The notes below the pieces were generated by a model, which had not been told where the DNA came from, made no database searches, and saw only the letters and a list, made by a program, of their open reading frames with translations. A stretch of DNA of 63,594 nucleotides, the filler included, from Klebsormidium nitens (Eukaryota; Plantae; Klebsormidiophyceae): assembly GCA_000708835.1 (NCBI GenBank). It is 10 parts of 10 records of this genome, joined end to end, with 100 filler letters (N's around TTAATTAATTAA, not from the genome) between each part and the next. Parts side by side here need not be neighbours in the genome. Positions count along the whole stretch, not along the records: positions 18,956 to 24,970 come from DF237856.1; 9 more parts are not named here. The stretch is one strand, 5' to 3'. Position 1 is the stretch's first letter; every line of letters begins with the position of its first letter. This document shows positions 6,848 to 24,970 of the stretch, one piece after another. The translations under genes were made by a program, and so were the position numbers.

Positions 6848-8089
6848 TCCCGTACGGCTCCGCGATCGGGCCCGAAATGACCTGCGGGGTGGCGCGCTCG
6901 ATATTCGGTTTTTGCTGCATTGGGTTTGTGGAAATATCCTGGGATTTTGTGACACGGTTTGACCGCGATCGCCACCTGATGCAGGTTTTGATACCGTACA
7001 ATCCAACCGTCCGAGCCTGGCACGCGTCCGATCTGTGACTCAGGCTTGCTCCAGTGCGAACCCTAACCCTAAGTTGCCCCCAACGTCTGCAGTTTGGAAA
7101 CATCTGAATCACGGTCCTGTATCCTAAGGCTAGAGCTCCTCTCGGTCAGGCTTGTGGAGCGTCTGACTCAGGCTTAAAACTTCTTTCTTAGCCACGTGGA
7201 GCTTCCTTAATTGTTCTAGTCAGGCTCGGAAACACTTTATTGTGCCACATGGAGCTTCCCTGATTGTCTTGGTCAGTTTTCTCTTCAGAGAGGCAACCAC
7301 CCTCAACCACCTCGTCTGAGTCGGGCCTTTCATTGAAGGCTTCAACTTTCGGTTCCAAGAAGTTCGTATCTATATAAAGAGGTTCTGCCCCCTCATTCGA
7401 TCATTTCCCAAATGTTTCTTAGCAGCAGCCCAACAACAGCTGAGTCTCCAGCCATCCTCTCTTCTCAAACCCGACCTGCCTACCACACTCCTCTGCAGCG
7501 CCATTTGCAGCACAGCATCACCCGCTTTCTTTGTCCACACCATTACATCAGCAGCTTCCTTTGCACCATCTTGCGGAGCCGGATCTCTGGAGCTCTTGCG
7601 TGCGCTTCTCAAGCTCCGTCCCTCTTGCGAGCAGCTTCACCAGTTTCTGCTGCACCTCCATTGTGTGGACTCTTGTTGAAGCATTCTGCCAACTTCAATT
7701 GTCATCGCGGAGCTAGTGCGTCTGTCCAGCTGTGCAGCCTCCAGTCAGCAGCTGGTGATTGAGCTCTAGCACTAGTTTGCCAGTGACAAGCGCAGAAGCG
7801 TGCGCCAGATGGAAAAAGAAATCTCCCAAAAGGTCTTTTGAGGTGAGTGTGATTGAAGTGAATGAAGTCAGACCTAGATTAAACATACCAAAGTCCCCAA
7901 TCTCTTCAAGCTACCGAGTAGCTCAAATGTTTAGAGTTGCATGTTGCAACAGGCTGCCAACATCTCTGCACTCAAGGAGCTAAACAATCAGTGAGAATTG
8001 AGTACAACTTGGCTCGTCCATGTTCTGCCAGTTCCGAGAGCACATGCCCAACTCGAGAACAAGAGTACTAGCAAGGCGCCATGCTTCCC

Positions 8090-18955: not shown

Positions 18956-19900
18956 CCTTTGGACCACACGTCGTCAAAGATTCTTAAGAAGTCCGGATGT
19001 TTCGCTAGGAAGAGCCATGTGCAAGGTGTGGTCCAGCCCGTTTCAAAGTTTGCAAGTCAGGCCGGCCATCCTGGCCATCTTGGGAAGCATATGGCAAGCA
19101 GTTCGGGTCCTGATGGACCACACGTCGTCAAAGATTCTTAAGATTTCTCCTCTCCTTGCCTGGCCGAGCTTTATACAAGGTGTGGTCCGGCCCGTTCCAA
19201 AGTTCGCAAGTCAGGCCAGCCATCCCGGACATTCAGAAGCATATGGCAAGCAGTCTTGGTCCGGTCCCTTTGGACCACACAACGTTAAAGATTCGTGTGA
19301 ATTAAGCTCTTTGCCAGGCGGCCCAGCTTTATACAAGGTGTGGTCCAGCGGCTCATGAAGTAGGCCGACCATCCCGGCCATCATAGAAGCATGTGGCGAG
19401 CAGTTTCGGTCCTGGTGGACCACACGTTGTCAATAGTTATTAGGAGAGTCCGCTCTTTGCTAGGAAGAGCCGTATGCAAGGTGTGGTCCAGCCGCTTATG
19501 AGGCAGGCCGGCCATCCGGGCCCTTTTGTAGCATATGTCAAGCACTTTCGGTCCTGGTGGACCACACGTTGTCAATAGTTATTAGGAATTTCGCTCTTTT
19601 CCATACGCAAGGTGTGGTCCAACCCGTTTATAAGTAAGACCGGCCATCCGGGCCATTCAGAAGCATGTGACGAAGCATTTTTGGGTTGGACCACACGTTG
19701 TCAAAAATTATTAGGAATTCCGCTCTTTGCTAGTAAGAGCCGTATGCAAGGTGTGGTCCAGCACGTTCGTAAGTCAGGCCGGCCATCCCGGCCATCCAGA
19801 AGCATATGGCAAGCAGTAGGCTGGCCTGGTGGACCACACGTTGCAAGTAGTTTTATTGAGAATCGGGTTAGGAGCCATCTGCAAGTTGTGGACCAGCGTC
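18956..19900. repeat. Tandem array (~130-157 bp period, ~7 units) of alternating inverted GGACCACAC/GTGTGGTCC motifs, upstream of the KDZ transposase
   Basis: GGACCACAC at 18961, 19115, 19272, 19417, 19559, 19688, 19831; GTGTGGTCC at 19026, 19180, 19338, 19481, 19612, 19751. Confidence 0.9.
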
Positions 19901-19947
19901 GGGACGGCCACCGGGCCACATGACGTGCAACTTTTGGTAACTCTGGC

Positions 19948-22900
19948 ATGATGAGCAGATTCCAGGGGGGCCGCAGAGGCTTAGGGCCATCGAAACCTAC
20001 TCAAACTCAAAGCTTTCTCCCCGGTCCCAGGATGACTCTCGTGACGGCGTGCTGTGACGAGAAAGGACACTCCGGGGTCGTGATCATCGCCTCGACCACC
20101 CCAGCGGCCTCGGCGGCCCTGCACGAGACCCTGAAAGCCGGTCAAGCCGTCAGGAGTTGTGCGGCAGTCCACTTCGAAGGACCGACTCCAGTCTTCAGCG
20201 ACATCAAGAGCGTCCCGGCGGCTGTGCCTCCCTTGCCGAATGCTGGGGGCGTGCGAGGAGGCCGCCTCTCCTATGCGGCCAAGCAGGGAGCCGCCGACTT
20301 CGCAATCGACTACGGACTCGCCTTCAGCTTGCGGCCCGCTGGGGCCTTTGCTCGAGGCGGATTTGGCTCGACGTGCATCGGGCGCACGTGCGGCGGAAAG
20401 GGGGCGGTCTATGCTCGGGGGAGCGAACCCTTCATCTGGGAGCGGAAACGAAACCGAGGCGGAGCAGTCATTTGCCGGGGTGGTGGGGGGCACCTTCTGT
20501 GCCTGCGGTGCGTGGAGGCCCAGTACAAAGAGGGGAGCCCCTTTGTTTCGAGCGCGACCGGAGGCCCTGTTCCTCAGCAAGAGCTCTTCACAAAGTACGA
20601 AGTGTTCCCCAGCACGAAGGAGGTTCGGGAGGTACGGTCGGGGGAGGAGGCGAGCGAGGGCGGCCACCAATTCTTCGTGCAAAGGAGGGATCTCGCCCCC
20701 TGCCCGTACTGCCGTGAGCCCAAGGCGGCCGCTCCATTGAGGCGCGGTGTCAAGAGGGCGCTTGAGGAGGGGCCCAGCCCACGAGAGCTCGGCACGGTGG
20801 CGCTCCTGTCGGAGTTGAGCCGAAGCAAAGTCCCTCCGATTGCAGTTGCCGCCGGCCTCTTTCTTGTGCCCCTGCTAGACGCCTCCGGTGGGCGCCTCCT
20901 GGACATTTTTGCCACGGATCGAGGGCTCAGTAACGTCCCTCGACTCGTGAAGGTCGACCACATGGGCAACTTCCGGTGCCTGTGCGGTCAAAAGGCGTGC
21001 CGGGACCACGAGGTGGGGTTCCTGGAGGCGACCCGTTCCGTGAGCGGCTGGTGGCAGGGCGGGGAGGCCATCTTCACGGCCTTTGACGAGAGCCGTCCCT
21101 TCGTGCGGGAGGTCACAAGCGGCGTGCCTTGGGTGTCGCCGCTAGAACAAGGGGGGTTCTTGGGGGCTGCTCTCTTTGGGCTTGATGCGGAGGCTTGGAA
21201 AGGGGGGCCGCAACTTCGAGTGATCGTCGTGAACAACGCTGGGGAGAAGCCCGTGGTATGCGTGCTTTGGGGAGAGAAGGCGCACTGCAGCGACATCGAG
21301 TGCACGGGTTCAGAGCGGTGCCGGCACCTCTTGGGGGTGCTCTCGAAGCAAACCTTGCCCCTGGTTGAGCGCGCAAATGATGGAGGCGGCAGCGAGGGGA
21401 GGCGGACTCTCACTGAGAGGCGGGCAGAAAGGGTTGAGCAGCGAGAAGCAGGGACGAGGAGGCTCTTGGTCTGTAACGACCCCGCGTGCCGGCGGCCGGA
21501 CTCAAAAGCTGCGTGCACCCACCGAGAGACCCTCGAGCCTTGGGAGTGCCTCTCGGCGGCGGCGCTCGACATGGGCCACAGCCACAAGCGAATTGACACC
21601 GTCATGAGCCGGGGCGGAGCGAGTGTTGCAAGCCTTTGTGAACGGTGGGGCGAAGAAGGTGTGCGACGACGGGACAAGGCAAAGCATTTTTGCGCTCCAA
21701 GACCCGTCGAGGTGCTCTCGCCCTGCGGCCGACCATGGCAGGTGGAGAGCAGGAGGGGGGCGCTGACGACGGCTGGAGCACGCTATGATACCACTACTTA
21801 CCGACGTGTCTGTCGCATCGCCCCGGGGCGGGAGGCGGCCTGCTGCTCAATCGCTTATGATGGCCAGGTGAATATATACTTCCCATGAAGCTCTCTATGA
21901 TGGAAATCTTCAAAGGGGGCTCGCCGTTTAAAGTCGGCATACGATGTGTTGGTTGACAGTGGAGGGGGTTGCTCACAACGCTCAAGTCGGGTATATGGGT
22001 TGTTTGTATATCGGAGGTCGAGATCTTTGATTTGGTCATCTGCCATCTCTCCCTCTTGCGGCACCCACCTGCATAGCAAAGACAGTTGCACATCAGCTTC
22101 TTCTTCGAACACCCTCTCGTCCCTGGCTTTGGAGCAGTCAAGAGTCGGCCGAAGGTCTATGCAATCCGCAAGACTGAGGCCCGCCAAAAAGGCTTGCATG
22201 TCAAAGTTCATCCCCAAAGCTTCGAGTTCCTTGTAATGTTTTATGAGATGGTTTCTTCTTTGAGCCACCACTCTCCTCCTCCAGGCATCGCGAGCCTGTT
22301 TGAAGCCATCAATTCCATTATTCTCTCGAATCGCTTGAGCGAGCACGTCCGACTTGCGATAGTATCCACGTGTGCGCGGACGAAGATGGCCCGGCCCGGG
22401 ATGGGGGACACATGGCAAACCGAAAAGGTCCTTCACTTGGTACTTTCGCCTAGCTTCAACGGCTGTCAGGCAGCCGAGCATGTCGTAATCGTAGTGAATA
22501 TAAATCCGACAAATCATTTTCCCCTTGTGTGGAGGAAAAGGCCATTGAACGCACTTACAGTCCTTTTCACAAAGCATGCACGTTTCGAGAGGCCTCTTGC
22601 TCTTTATGCACGGATGTGGTCCCGCCTCGAATCCTGTGAATGAAAGCGGCTATTCATGCATCCTGCTCTCAACAAAGGCTTGCGCATCTTTGCACGTGCA
22701 TGCCGAAGCAGCCAAGTCCTCAAGTTCAAGCTTTCCATTCTCTCCAATGATGTTCAGCACGGATGCAAACTTGGCGTTGACGTCCATGCAGCTGATATCA
22801 ACCTCTTAAAAAAAAGACTACTTTGAACGCGGCAATTGAACGGCCTTTCTAAATGTATCTTTGCAGGAGGATGGAATCTTTAACTTCTCCGGCAACAACC

Positions 22901-24951
22901 TCGTCTCGCACGGCCTCCTCCTGCGCAACCACTTTGCCGCGGCCCTGGGGGCGGCCCATAGCCTCAACTTTGAGGCGGGGGACATGGCGACGAGGTGCCT
23001 CGAGGGGCCGAACGTCCCTAGGCTGGACGACCGGGTGTTCGACTCGGCGATGCAGGCCTTCAACGACCTCGCCGCCCGGCCTCGGATCCAGCACGTGTGC
23101 TCGCGCCTCGATTGCGCGCATCTCTACACGTGCGAGGTGAAGGCGGTCGAAGTGGAGGCCCTTAGGGCTGGCAACCCTCTGAGGCCGGAGCGAACGGAGG
23201 GGCCGAGTTCTGACCTGGCCACGTACGCGTTTGGGCGGGACAAGGTCATCACCTTTGACGGCACCTTCTTTGCCAATTCGAGCGCGATGCGCGATTTTGA
23301 TACGGAAGCGTCCTTGCACAGCATCTGCGAGCCCGACCCCGGAGCGCCGAAGGTCGCTGGAGGGTTTACTCCTCTGAGCGTGGGTGGTGTGCGTCCCTCT
23401 GACGTGCCGCTAGAGGGGATCGACTGCCCTTGGAAGTATCGCAACGGGCTGTCGGAGTTGCGGCCGGCCGTGCGAGTTTTGGCGATGAGGTGGTGCAACT
23501 TTCGCAAGGCTCCAGCGCAAGGGAGCAACGCGCCTCTGAAGCCGGAGGAGTTTGTCGCCATGCGGGAGGGGCTTCCGATGAACGTTGCCGCTCTGATCGA
23601 CCTCGTGATCGAGTCGGGAGCGTGTCGCGACCCTGCCACGTGTGCGATTTGCAAGGCGGTGCCGCGGCGGCCGTGGATGCAAGGGTTCCTCAAGGACGGG
23701 CCCGTGGGACCGACCGGCTGGTGTCCGACGCACTTTCAAGCGTACGGAGCCCTTCTTCACGCCCTGCTCATCCCTCGCTACTCCTGGGTGTTTGGGCGCG
23801 TCGTCACTCTGAAGCTGCTGAGACACGCGCTGCTCGAGGGGCCGCTCGACGAGCGGGGGTTGGCGTACCTCTCCAACGACGGCCCCATGGTGGCGGCCAT
23901 CTTGCGCCTCCATCCCGTTGCTGGGGGGCTGTATACCTTTCCGGCGGCGCTCCGCCCCCTCGTGCGTGACATCTACGCCACGAATCTCCTCTGCTTTGAG
24001 CCGAGCGCGAACCGGCCGGGTCCGTCCTCGCGATCGCCACTGGCCGCCCTCCATGATGCTACCGAGCATCTGTGGGCAATCGAAGGCGAGAGGCTGAGGC
24101 TCATCGGTCAGCTGGAGGCGGCCGCGATGGAATACGCGGAGCAGCGAGGGGCGGCGCTCAAGAGGGTCGCCAACTCGCTCCTGTTCGAGCTGGAGGTCCG
24201 CGAGCCCCAGTGCTATGGAGAGGGCGGCTTCCTTCAAGTGCCATCGGCGGCCTACGTTGAGCGGGTCGGCGCCGTCTCCACCTACTCGTTTCATCCCTTG
24301 CTGTACGGTCGGCCTCGGTTCGTCGATTGGGAAGACGAAGCCGGTCGGGGGAAGAGGGGTTCGGAGGAGCGGCTCACTCAGCACTGCAGCGCCCCCAACC
24401 CTCGATCGTCAAAGGGGCGCGCGGGGGTGTTTATTGCTTGTTGCCAGGACCGAGCTCCCTTGGGGTATCACTGGCTCAAGGGGGGCGAATCCGTCTCGGA
24501 CCTTGGGACGGTGCTTCTAACGCGGTTCCCTTTCAAGACGCTGCGGGGGCTCACGATCGTGGAGGACGCCGCTTGCAACGCCCAGGAGTGGTTCTTGAAT
24601 CGGGTGCCGCAGTTGGCCAAGTTTATGTTGTTCGTCGTCGACCGCTTCCACTCGGGGCCCGTGAGTTGCGCACCGGCGGGGGCGAAGCGCTATGCAACGC
24701 ACACGTGTGCGCCAACGCTGTTCATCGACTCGTTTCCGCAACATGGCCACACGATTACAACGGCTTCAGAGGGGGTCAATTCTGGGCTGAAGCGATGTGC
24801 AGCTAGCCTTCAGCAGATCACGAGCATCAGAAGGTTGATAAGCCGTGTGACGACCATTCTCGACACGCTTTTCGAACGGTCAAAGTACGCCGTCTATTGG
24901 AGTGAGTCTAGCAATCCGTTGAGGGACTCGATCAGGCGGGCGCGCGGCTGA
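19948..24951 (+). CDS. KDZ-type (Kyakuja-Dileera-Zisupton/HMGXB3-related) DDE transposase, family 1, two exons, ~1334 aa, intact
   Basis: Exon 1 19948-21867, intron 21868-22866 (CAG/GTGAAT...TTGCAG/GAG, phase 0), exon 2 22867-24951; junction YDGQ-EDGIFNFSGNNL. SWIM-like CLCGQKACRDH and CSDIECTGSERCRH. Core motifs TFDGT, FIACCQD..GYH..GGES, EDAAC, VVDRFH, ASEGVNS. Confidence 0.85.
21855..22787 (-). pseudogene. Antisense intron-nested gene: F-box-like N-terminus + XPA-like zinc/DNA-binding domain (copy 1, premature stop)
   Basis: ATG 22787 MDVNAKFASVLNIIGENGKLELEDLAASACTCKDAQ, in-frame TAG at 22650-22652, then continues in frame into ORF 21855-22577 (CMLC..ICRIY..CLTAVEARRKYQVKDL..YYRKSDVLAQAIRENNG). 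Homologous to 60139-60897. Confidence 0.75.
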
Positions 24952-24970
24952 CGCGCGGCCTCATTACTCT

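Follow-up and report, generated by a model that had tools for sequence, protein, structure and literature searches.

We have identified a protein-coding gene that lies antisense within the single intron of a transposase-like gene in the alga Klebsormidium nitens. The window, i.e., the whole stretch of DNA that was analysed, measures 63,594 nucleotides (nt), filler included, and joins 10 parts of genome assembly GCA_000708835.1; the gene pair occupies the part that comes from DF237856.1 (positions 18,956 to 24,970). The host gene looks, by its sequence features, like a multi-copy transposase gene of the KDZ (Kyakuja-Dileera-Zisupton) type, and the nested gene encodes a protein with a DNA-binding domain that very probably shares ancestry with that of XPA. 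The explanation that best fits the evidence as a whole, to which we give a probability of about 0.7, is that a selected XPA-type gene, positioned antisense in the intron of a KDZ-type transposase gene, encodes an accessory factor of the element. Table 1 lists the features.

Table 1. Features of the window piece and of related loci (positions are those of the window unless a locus is named).
Feature	Position	Strand	Basis
Array of ~143-155-bp tandem repeats, upstream of the transposase, cut by the piece edge	18956-19900	.	TRF, repeat families, motif count
Host gene exon 1, Cys/His-rich N-terminal half, 640 codons, ends ...SIAYDGQ	19948-21867	+	open frame; homologous in all loci
Host intron, 999 nt, GT..AG, lower GC	21868-22866	+	conserved junction, NCBI models, GC profile
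Nested antisense gene frame, 310 codons plus TAA, pseudogene in the window	21855-22787	-	translation, homologues, dN/dS
C4 zinc finger (C70, C73, C93; the fourth is Tyr96 in the window), XPA-type alpha/beta domain and basic helix	22233-22580	-	profile, AlphaFold, fold searches
In-frame TAG at codon 46, breaking the window's nested gene; Tyr (TAT) in L001	22650-22652	-	translation, alignment
N-terminal 45 codons, best-conserved segment, three predicted helices, F-box-like	22653-22787	-	alignment, Atlas features
Short conserved motif TTTGAACGCGGCAATTGAAC / GAACGCGGCAA (GACGCGCAACTGAG in other copies)	22822-22841	.	junction comparison, 10 copies
Host gene exon 2, KDZ-like catalytic half, 694 codons plus stop	22867-24951	+	open frame; 22 paralogues; Atlas features
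Prim-Pol/DUF5906 gene	L004:7560-10126, L005:7350-10127, L001:7588-9698, L006:4643-8330, L007:804-1097	convergent in most loci	domains
Nested gene, intact, 304 aa	L004 (= L011)
Nested gene, intact, 307 aa	L006
Nested gene, open, C-terminal deletion, 230 aa	L001
Nested gene, open, C-terminal deletion, 198 aa	L010
Nested gene, in-frame stop	window
Nested gene, stops or frameshifts	L003, L007, L008, L009, L012/13
Nested gene, start lost and C-terminal deletion	L005

A gene nested antisense in the intron of a transposase-like gene

Thirteen related loci (L001 to L013) were fetched by exact-protein look-up. In the window, and in every one of the 12 other loci that are readable at this place (L001 and L003-L013), the nested gene or a homologue of it stands on the opposite strand between the two host exons; these loci amount to about 10 distinct copies (L011 matches L004; L012 and L013 are near-duplicates). 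The 13th locus, L002, has an assembly gap plus a different insert at the intron position. The Logan contigs L011-L013 carry the nested gene with the flanking exons and the intron. An earlier note on this window, made from the sequence alone, had reported the layout in two copies; its conservation extends well beyond these.

The nested gene is intronless and fills the host intron almost entirely. In the window, its frame starts with an ATG at 22787, 79 nt from the host acceptor, and ends with a TAA at 21855-21857, the last four codons and the stop overlapping the end of host exon 1. The earlier note had placed this frame correctly and had measured the same distance to the acceptor, but the frame is not open: a TAG interrupts it, the longest true open reading frame (ORF) measures 240 amino acids (aa) from an ATG at 22577 and is devoid of the first zinc-finger cysteine, and the fourth zinc-finger cysteine has become a Tyr (22500-22502). 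With a nonsense codon and a lost zinc ligand, the nested copy of the window is a pseudogene, although both transposase exons are open. This disruption had escaped the earlier note, and the peptides quoted there (CKIC..LPICLSC, TRFYRESDLRVLAVRERGG and LKLSDL...) are not found in the window; they match L004/P0024-type copies. Intact orthologues count 304-307 aa, and only L004 has an open nested gene together with two open host exons.

Between copies, the ratio of nonsynonymous to synonymous divergence (dN/dS) of the nested gene is 0.13-0.29 (Fisher p down to 8e-27). In each of three parts taken separately (N-terminal 45 codons, zinc-finger/XPA core, helical domain), it is significantly below 1. 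Comparisons between subfamilies show saturated synonymous sites and an amino-acid identity of no more than 44-60%. The dN/dS values and the conservation, therefore, mark the nested gene as a real coding gene, selected in active lineages; judged by these patterns of substitution, it has been under purifying selection while the lineages diverged to synonymous saturation, and it decays in individual dead copies, as does the transposase. A chance ORF or neutral intron sequence is ruled out by the dN/dS and the cross-copy conservation. The comparison of dN/dS across copies had been proposed in the earlier note: the ratio is not near 1, but disruption is frequent. The nested gene evolves several times faster than the transposase, and its GC content at third codon positions (GC3) differs stably from that of the host gene (0.51-0.54 vs. 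0.70-0.78).

An exhaustive phmmer search of 1.84 billion representatives returned 13 matches to the nested protein, one of them spurious: P0031 (1979 aa), a bacterial SdrD-repeat protein, was rejected as a family member. A profile search of a 5.8-billion set returned 14 matches, none with a Pfam domain. None of the matches in either set belongs to the NCBI K. nitens annotation, and the NCBI gene tables of L001 and L006 list no gene on the nested strand. A word-index search with the 240-aa ORF of the window gave no match, though the exhaustive phmmer search found the family, and single-protein searches of viral and metagenome collections for related loci yielded no relatives.

The host gene belongs to a multi-copy family. 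In all, 22 proteins match exon 2 at 73-96% identity (from K. nitens, two JGI samples and one ENA assembly), most of them K. nitens proteins named "hypothetical" or "HMG domain-containing"; the window piece is, therefore, one copy of a dispersed Klebsormidium repeat family. Atlas (protein-language-model) features of exon 2 lead to KDZ clusters (0.95, 193 shared), and nine of the ten best family matches are KDZ. In addition, CxC4 (PF18717), a KDZ-associated cysteine cluster, matches four of five spliced paralogue models at E 0.002-0.04, in all cases below the gathering score, with the matched segment spanning the exon junction. Exon 2 also contains the candidate acidic motifs VEDAAC, VVDRFH and ASEGVNSGLKR, spotted by eye only. 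An AlphaFold model of the exon 2 half from a shallow alignment was unusable (predicted local distance difference test score, pLDDT, of 33), and Rfam and tRNA scans of the window piece gave no match. Among copies, synonymous divergence (dS) of the host exons runs from 0.3 to >1.5 with a dN/dS of 0.06-0.14, and most copies carry frameshifts or stops in the host gene; an old transposon family comprising several lineages would be expected to show this pattern. The earlier note's view of the host as the transposase of a multi-copy element thus gains support, with the Atlas features pointing to the KDZ type.

The exons are separated by an intron whose bounds and GT/AG ends the earlier note had given exactly. 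The donor (...GATGGCCAG followed by GTGAAT...) has its GT at 21868-21869, the acceptor (...TTTGCAG followed by GAGGAT...) its AG at 22865-22866, and the GC content steps sharply at the boundaries (0.47-0.55 in the intron vs. 0.64-0.68 in the exons). In 10 diverged copies, a G-GT donor and a YAG-GA acceptor occur at the identical codon boundary around an intron of 652-999 nt, and seven annotated NCBI K. nitens models join AYDG(Q/R) to EDGIF. Splicing is deduced here from sequence and annotation, and by sequence criteria the transposase gene is really split by a single conserved intron at ...AYDGQ-EDGIF.... The non-coding stretch from the nested ATG to the host acceptor is otherwise unalignable between the window and nine other copies, except for one conserved motif (Table 1). 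This motif lies upstream of both the host acceptor (by 25-45 nt) and the nested ATG (by 35-55 nt), and could be the branch-point region of the host intron, the core promoter or 5′-untranslated region of the nested gene, or both.

In another subfamily, the AYDG-EDGIF slot holds a different insert (L002:7950-8684; P0022 residues ~602-725; P0006). This sense-strand ORF or cassette exon measures ~125 aa (…FTDTTEMS…AEYKQSQ), is acidic and has no Pfam match; two K. nitens models annotate it as coding. Alternative modules, it seems, can occupy the slot.

An XPA-like core and an F-box-like N-terminus

The intact nested protein of ~305 aa is made up of an N-terminal motif of ~45 aa, a zinc finger, an XPA/Rad14-type domain, a long basic helix and C-terminal parts, the last consisting of a small conserved helical domain and a variable tail. 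The CxxC-x18-CxxC zinc finger is conserved in intact copies (L004, L006, L001, L003, P0025 and others); in human XPA, the corresponding cysteines are C105, C108, C126 and C129 (CxxC-x17-CxxC). A profile of 17 members searched against 177,635 PDB sequences ranked XPA/Rad14 proteins in all of the top six places (E 0.07-0.65), in alignments that reach from the zinc finger as far as the basic helix. Given the family alignment, AlphaFold models residues 50-150 at pLDDT 86-97. With this model, the 13 best Foldseek matches in the PDB are all XPA/Rad14, and the eight best in AFDB Swiss-Prot are XPA/RAD14, followed by SLC30A9, the N-terminal XPA-like domain of which (PDB 2ENK) ranks just below XPA in the fold searches. 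The best VIA-align hit is 6j44 (Z 5.0, 114 of 126 residues), the best BFVD match is the RAD14 of Clandestinovirus (E 5.6e-4), with giant-virus "XPA domain" and "F-box" proteins next, and the Atlas features of the nested protein lead to XPA_C clusters.

The unanimity of these rankings, together with the shared signatures CxxC-x18-CxxC and L-T-x-x-E-A-x-x-K-Y-x-[IV]-K-D, makes homology of the DNA-binding domain with that of XPA very probable, and the XPA-like core recognised by eye in the earlier note is borne out by PDB profile, AlphaFold, Foldseek and VIA-align alike, modest as each score is. The likeness to XPA/Rad14 (1XPA, 6J44, 6LAE, 5A39, 5LCL) comprises the C4 finger (CxxC-x17/18-CxxC), the alpha/beta domain with its signature L-T-x-T/A-E-A-x-x-x-Y-x-[IL]-K-D, the strand pair and the long basic C-terminal helix. 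Nevertheless, the nested protein is not an XPA orthologue, because the partner-binding regions of XPA are absent: it is devoid of the N-terminal RPA32 and ERCC1 motifs and of the TFIIH-binding C-terminus, and has instead an N-terminal motif and a C-terminal helical domain that are unrelated to XPA. Moreover, the gene is transposon-encoded, multi-copy and located inside an intron, and the domain is, thus, paralogue-like rather than orthologous. Viridiplantae (green plants and green algae) have been reported to be without XPA (PMC10810185).

The N-terminal 45 residues (alignment A2) have a mean column identity of 55%, with invariant G, L, L, D and TCK. For residues 1-52, the best Atlas feature cluster is F-box (0.89) and the ten best family-assigned matches are all F-box, by a measure that lacks validation on fragments. 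Among the 30 best AFDB-cluster fold matches, ten carry an automatic F-box name, and several of these align from their N-termini. The prediction of three helices within residues 3-44 is also in favour of an F-box. Three results speak against it: these helices have a pLDDT of ~45, i.e., low confidence; the Pfam F-box models match neither the full members nor 10 N-terminal fragments, even at E up to 10; and a profile of the N-terminus searched against PDB sequences finds no F-box protein. The resemblance that the earlier note had seen to part of an F-box is, thus, plausible from the Atlas features and the names of the fold matches, but not from Pfam, the PDB profile or the model confidence, and we consider the chances that the N-terminus is a true F-box to be even.

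An "F-box clade" of remote XPA homologues has been described (Kose et al., NAR 2023, PMC10810185), with which the nested protein shares an N-terminal F-box(-like) motif followed by an XPA-like domain, a further point in favour of the F-box reading. That clade is reported to be without the conserved cysteines (PMC10810185), whereas intact nested copies keep all four; no member of it is described as transposon-borne, and F-box hidden Markov models miss the nested family. Among the BFVD matches are an F-box protein of a Pandoravirus and an XPA-domain protein of a Fadolivirus, and the nested protein appears to be related to an uncharacterised F-box/XPA-like group that also occurs in fungi and giant viruses.

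Repeats upstream and a Prim-Pol gene downstream

Tandem Repeats Finder (TRF) describes the array upstream of the transposase as 4.6 copies with a period of 143, and the array comprises the repeat families D1-D5. Each unit holds the inverted pair TGGACCACAC / GTGTGGTCCA, seen as inverted pairs I10 and I11 with spacers of 57-63 nt; the TGGACCACAC motif has 12 exact occurrences on alternating strands, against 0.01 expected. A related array occurs upstream in L005, the sole other locus with the exact TGGACCACAC motif, whereas different repeat arrays occupy the equivalent upstream position in other subfamilies (L004:505-1764; L007). The window's array probably represents subterminal repeats of the element, and its units could be protein-binding sites or form hairpins or cruciforms.

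In every locus that is long enough, a gene with Prim-Pol and DUF5906/VapE-like (D5-type primase-helicase) domains follows the transposase at a distance of 0.6-3 kb. It belongs to the repeated unit and is homologous across L002, L005, L006, L007 and L008; the element may, thus, be a large composite transposon with a replication module of its own. Directly past the transposase stop codon of L004, there are two direct repeats of ~300 bp (6980-7282 and 7333-7635), 82% identical; such direct repeats are also conserved in L003, L006, L007 and L009.

Proposed role, alternatives and significance

We propose that the nested protein is an accessory DNA-binding or adaptor factor encoded by the element, and not a nucleotide-excision-repair XPA. 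Its XPA-type domain would bind bent, junction or hairpin DNA, namely transposon ends or transposition intermediates, and the palindrome-bearing upstream subterminal repeats would be among its candidate targets. Through its conserved N-terminus, the protein would bring in a partner, which might be SKP1/SCF should that region be a true F-box, and this recruitment could help to assemble, remodel or clear the transposition complex, or else target a host factor. The two genes are nested convergently, and transcribing one therefore yields RNA antisense to the other; mutual interference by transcription or double-stranded RNA (dsRNA) is likely a side effect rather than the main function, and the antisense geometry cannot account for the coding constraint. 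The earlier note had suggested roles in ubiquitination, repair or antisense regulation, none of which is established by the present results.

A far more specific scenario, which we regard as a long shot, would make the element a composite replicative transposon. The nested protein would then be a structure-specific SCF adaptor, bound to the branched strand-transfer intermediate or to hairpin-forming subterminal repeats, that brings about the ubiquitin-dependent removal of the KDZ transpososome and the hand-off of the junction to the Prim-Pol/DUF5906 primase-helicase of the element. Its position antisense in the intron would tie its expression inversely to that of the transposase. If true, eukaryotes would have a parallel to the hand-off that ClpX mediates in phage Mu.

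A number of results weigh against the proposal of a selected XPA-type accessory factor in a KDZ-type element. The KDZ assignment comes from language-model features and sub-threshold CxC4 matches: Pfam gives no KDZ (PF18758) match, and nothing significant, for either host block or for the spliced paralogue models. Neither element ends (terminal inverted repeats or CA..TG) nor target-site duplications were found in the piece or the loci, all of which are cut. As for XPA, the structural comparison that the earlier note had recommended put XPA/Rad14 on top, but the Pfam comparison recommended along with it failed, since XPA_C and XPA_N match none of the 17 members; no XPA score is significant alone, and TM-scores are low and root-mean-square deviations high, as the long helices take up different positions. 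Most copies have a disrupted or truncated nested gene, and it is disrupted in three of the four in which at least exon 2 is uninterrupted (window, L003 and L009, of which L003 and L009 carry host stops too), so it is not required in cis by every copy. Finally, the history of the nested gene is incongruent with that of the host exons: between the window and L004, exon 2 has a dS of 0.33, yet the synonymous sites of the nested gene are saturated.

The nested gene of the window is closest to that of L001, the exons of which rank among the most distant. Within the host gene of the window, L003 comes nearest to the final 119 codons of exon 1 (dS 0.75) and L004 to exon 2, a mosaic that suggests recombination or gene conversion among copies of the element. 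Recombination or cassette exchange between elements would also be the simplest reading of the incongruence of the nested gene, which, on these comparisons, may move between elements as a cassette.

Such mobility bears on the possibility that the nested gene is passenger cargo: a selfish or host-derived gene riding the intron slot, possibly exchanged as a cassette, without a part in transposition, and selected for another function, e.g., manipulating the chromatin, silencing or repair of the host, as viral F-box proteins do. Its GC3, foreign to the host gene, would fit, as would its incongruent history, the different cassette that the other subfamily holds at the same slot, the giant-virus proteins among its nearest neighbours in structure and features, and the open transposase frames of a window copy in which the nested gene is broken; moreover, KDZ elements are known to bear cargo such as TET/JBP (PMC12730594). 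On the other hand, the nested gene was seen only inside this intron and never free-standing in the sample examined, it has persisted in lineages so diverged that synonymous sites are saturated, and an accessory factor of transposition would require just such a structure-specific DNA-binding domain; we thus hold the passenger explanation to be unlikely. The earlier note's more particular claim, that the element had captured a cargo gene and hidden it in a new intron, is not established; the other subfamily has a different cassette at the slot.

Two further explanations appear considerably weaker. The nested locus could act as an antisense regulator, its transcript over exon 1 (possibly also exon 2) dampening the transposase by dsRNA, small interfering RNA or interference, with the protein being secondary. 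The overlap is indeed unavoidable, with the nested stop inside host exon 1 and the ATG close to the acceptor, but a function of the RNA only leaves codon-level selection, conserved cysteines and a confidently folded domain unexplained, which renders it improbable. Slightly less credible still is that there is no intron but a three-gene element, in which the two sense ORFs are genes in their own right on either side of a third on the opposite strand, the junction being an artefact of gene prediction. The NCBI models may be ab initio predictions, and the prokaryote-style calling at JGI gives the two halves as separate ORFs; against this, GT and AG are found at an exact codon boundary with a continuous frame in 10 copies with an exon dS of up to >1, exon 2 is without a conserved start codon of its own at the boundary, and the sub-threshold CxC4 matches cross the junction in four of the five spliced models.

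DNA transposons with two genes, the second encoding an accessory DNA-binding protein, are represented by PIF/Harbinger (Myb-like ORF) and CACTA (TNPA). The element described here resembles these, and the KDZ elements that carry cargo genes, in having a second conserved gene with the transposase, and it resembles PIF/Harbinger and CACTA further in that this gene encodes a DNA-binding protein; it differs from all of them in that the second gene does not adjoin the transposase gene but runs antisense inside the intron of the latter, and in that the domain is of XPA type, rather than Myb/SANT or dioxygenase. Accessory and cargo genes in DNA transposons, including KDZ (PMC12730594), and F-box/XPA-like proteins (PMC10810185) are already known. 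In a limited search of the open-access literature, we found no description of a selected gene antisense in a transposase's own intron, in agreement with the earlier note, nor of an XPA-type protein as a transposon gene.

The nested gene is a real gene missed by the reference annotation, and it adds a selected second gene to the poorly characterised KDZ superfamily, in a streptophyte alga near the origin of land plants. Its packaging is unusual: an antisense, intronless gene in the only intron of the transposase gene, an arrangement that could couple the expression of both. It also places an XPA-type DNA-binding domain in Viridiplantae, a lineage reported to lack XPA. As a tractable, multi-copy example, it could give the F-box/XPA-like group its first functional handle.

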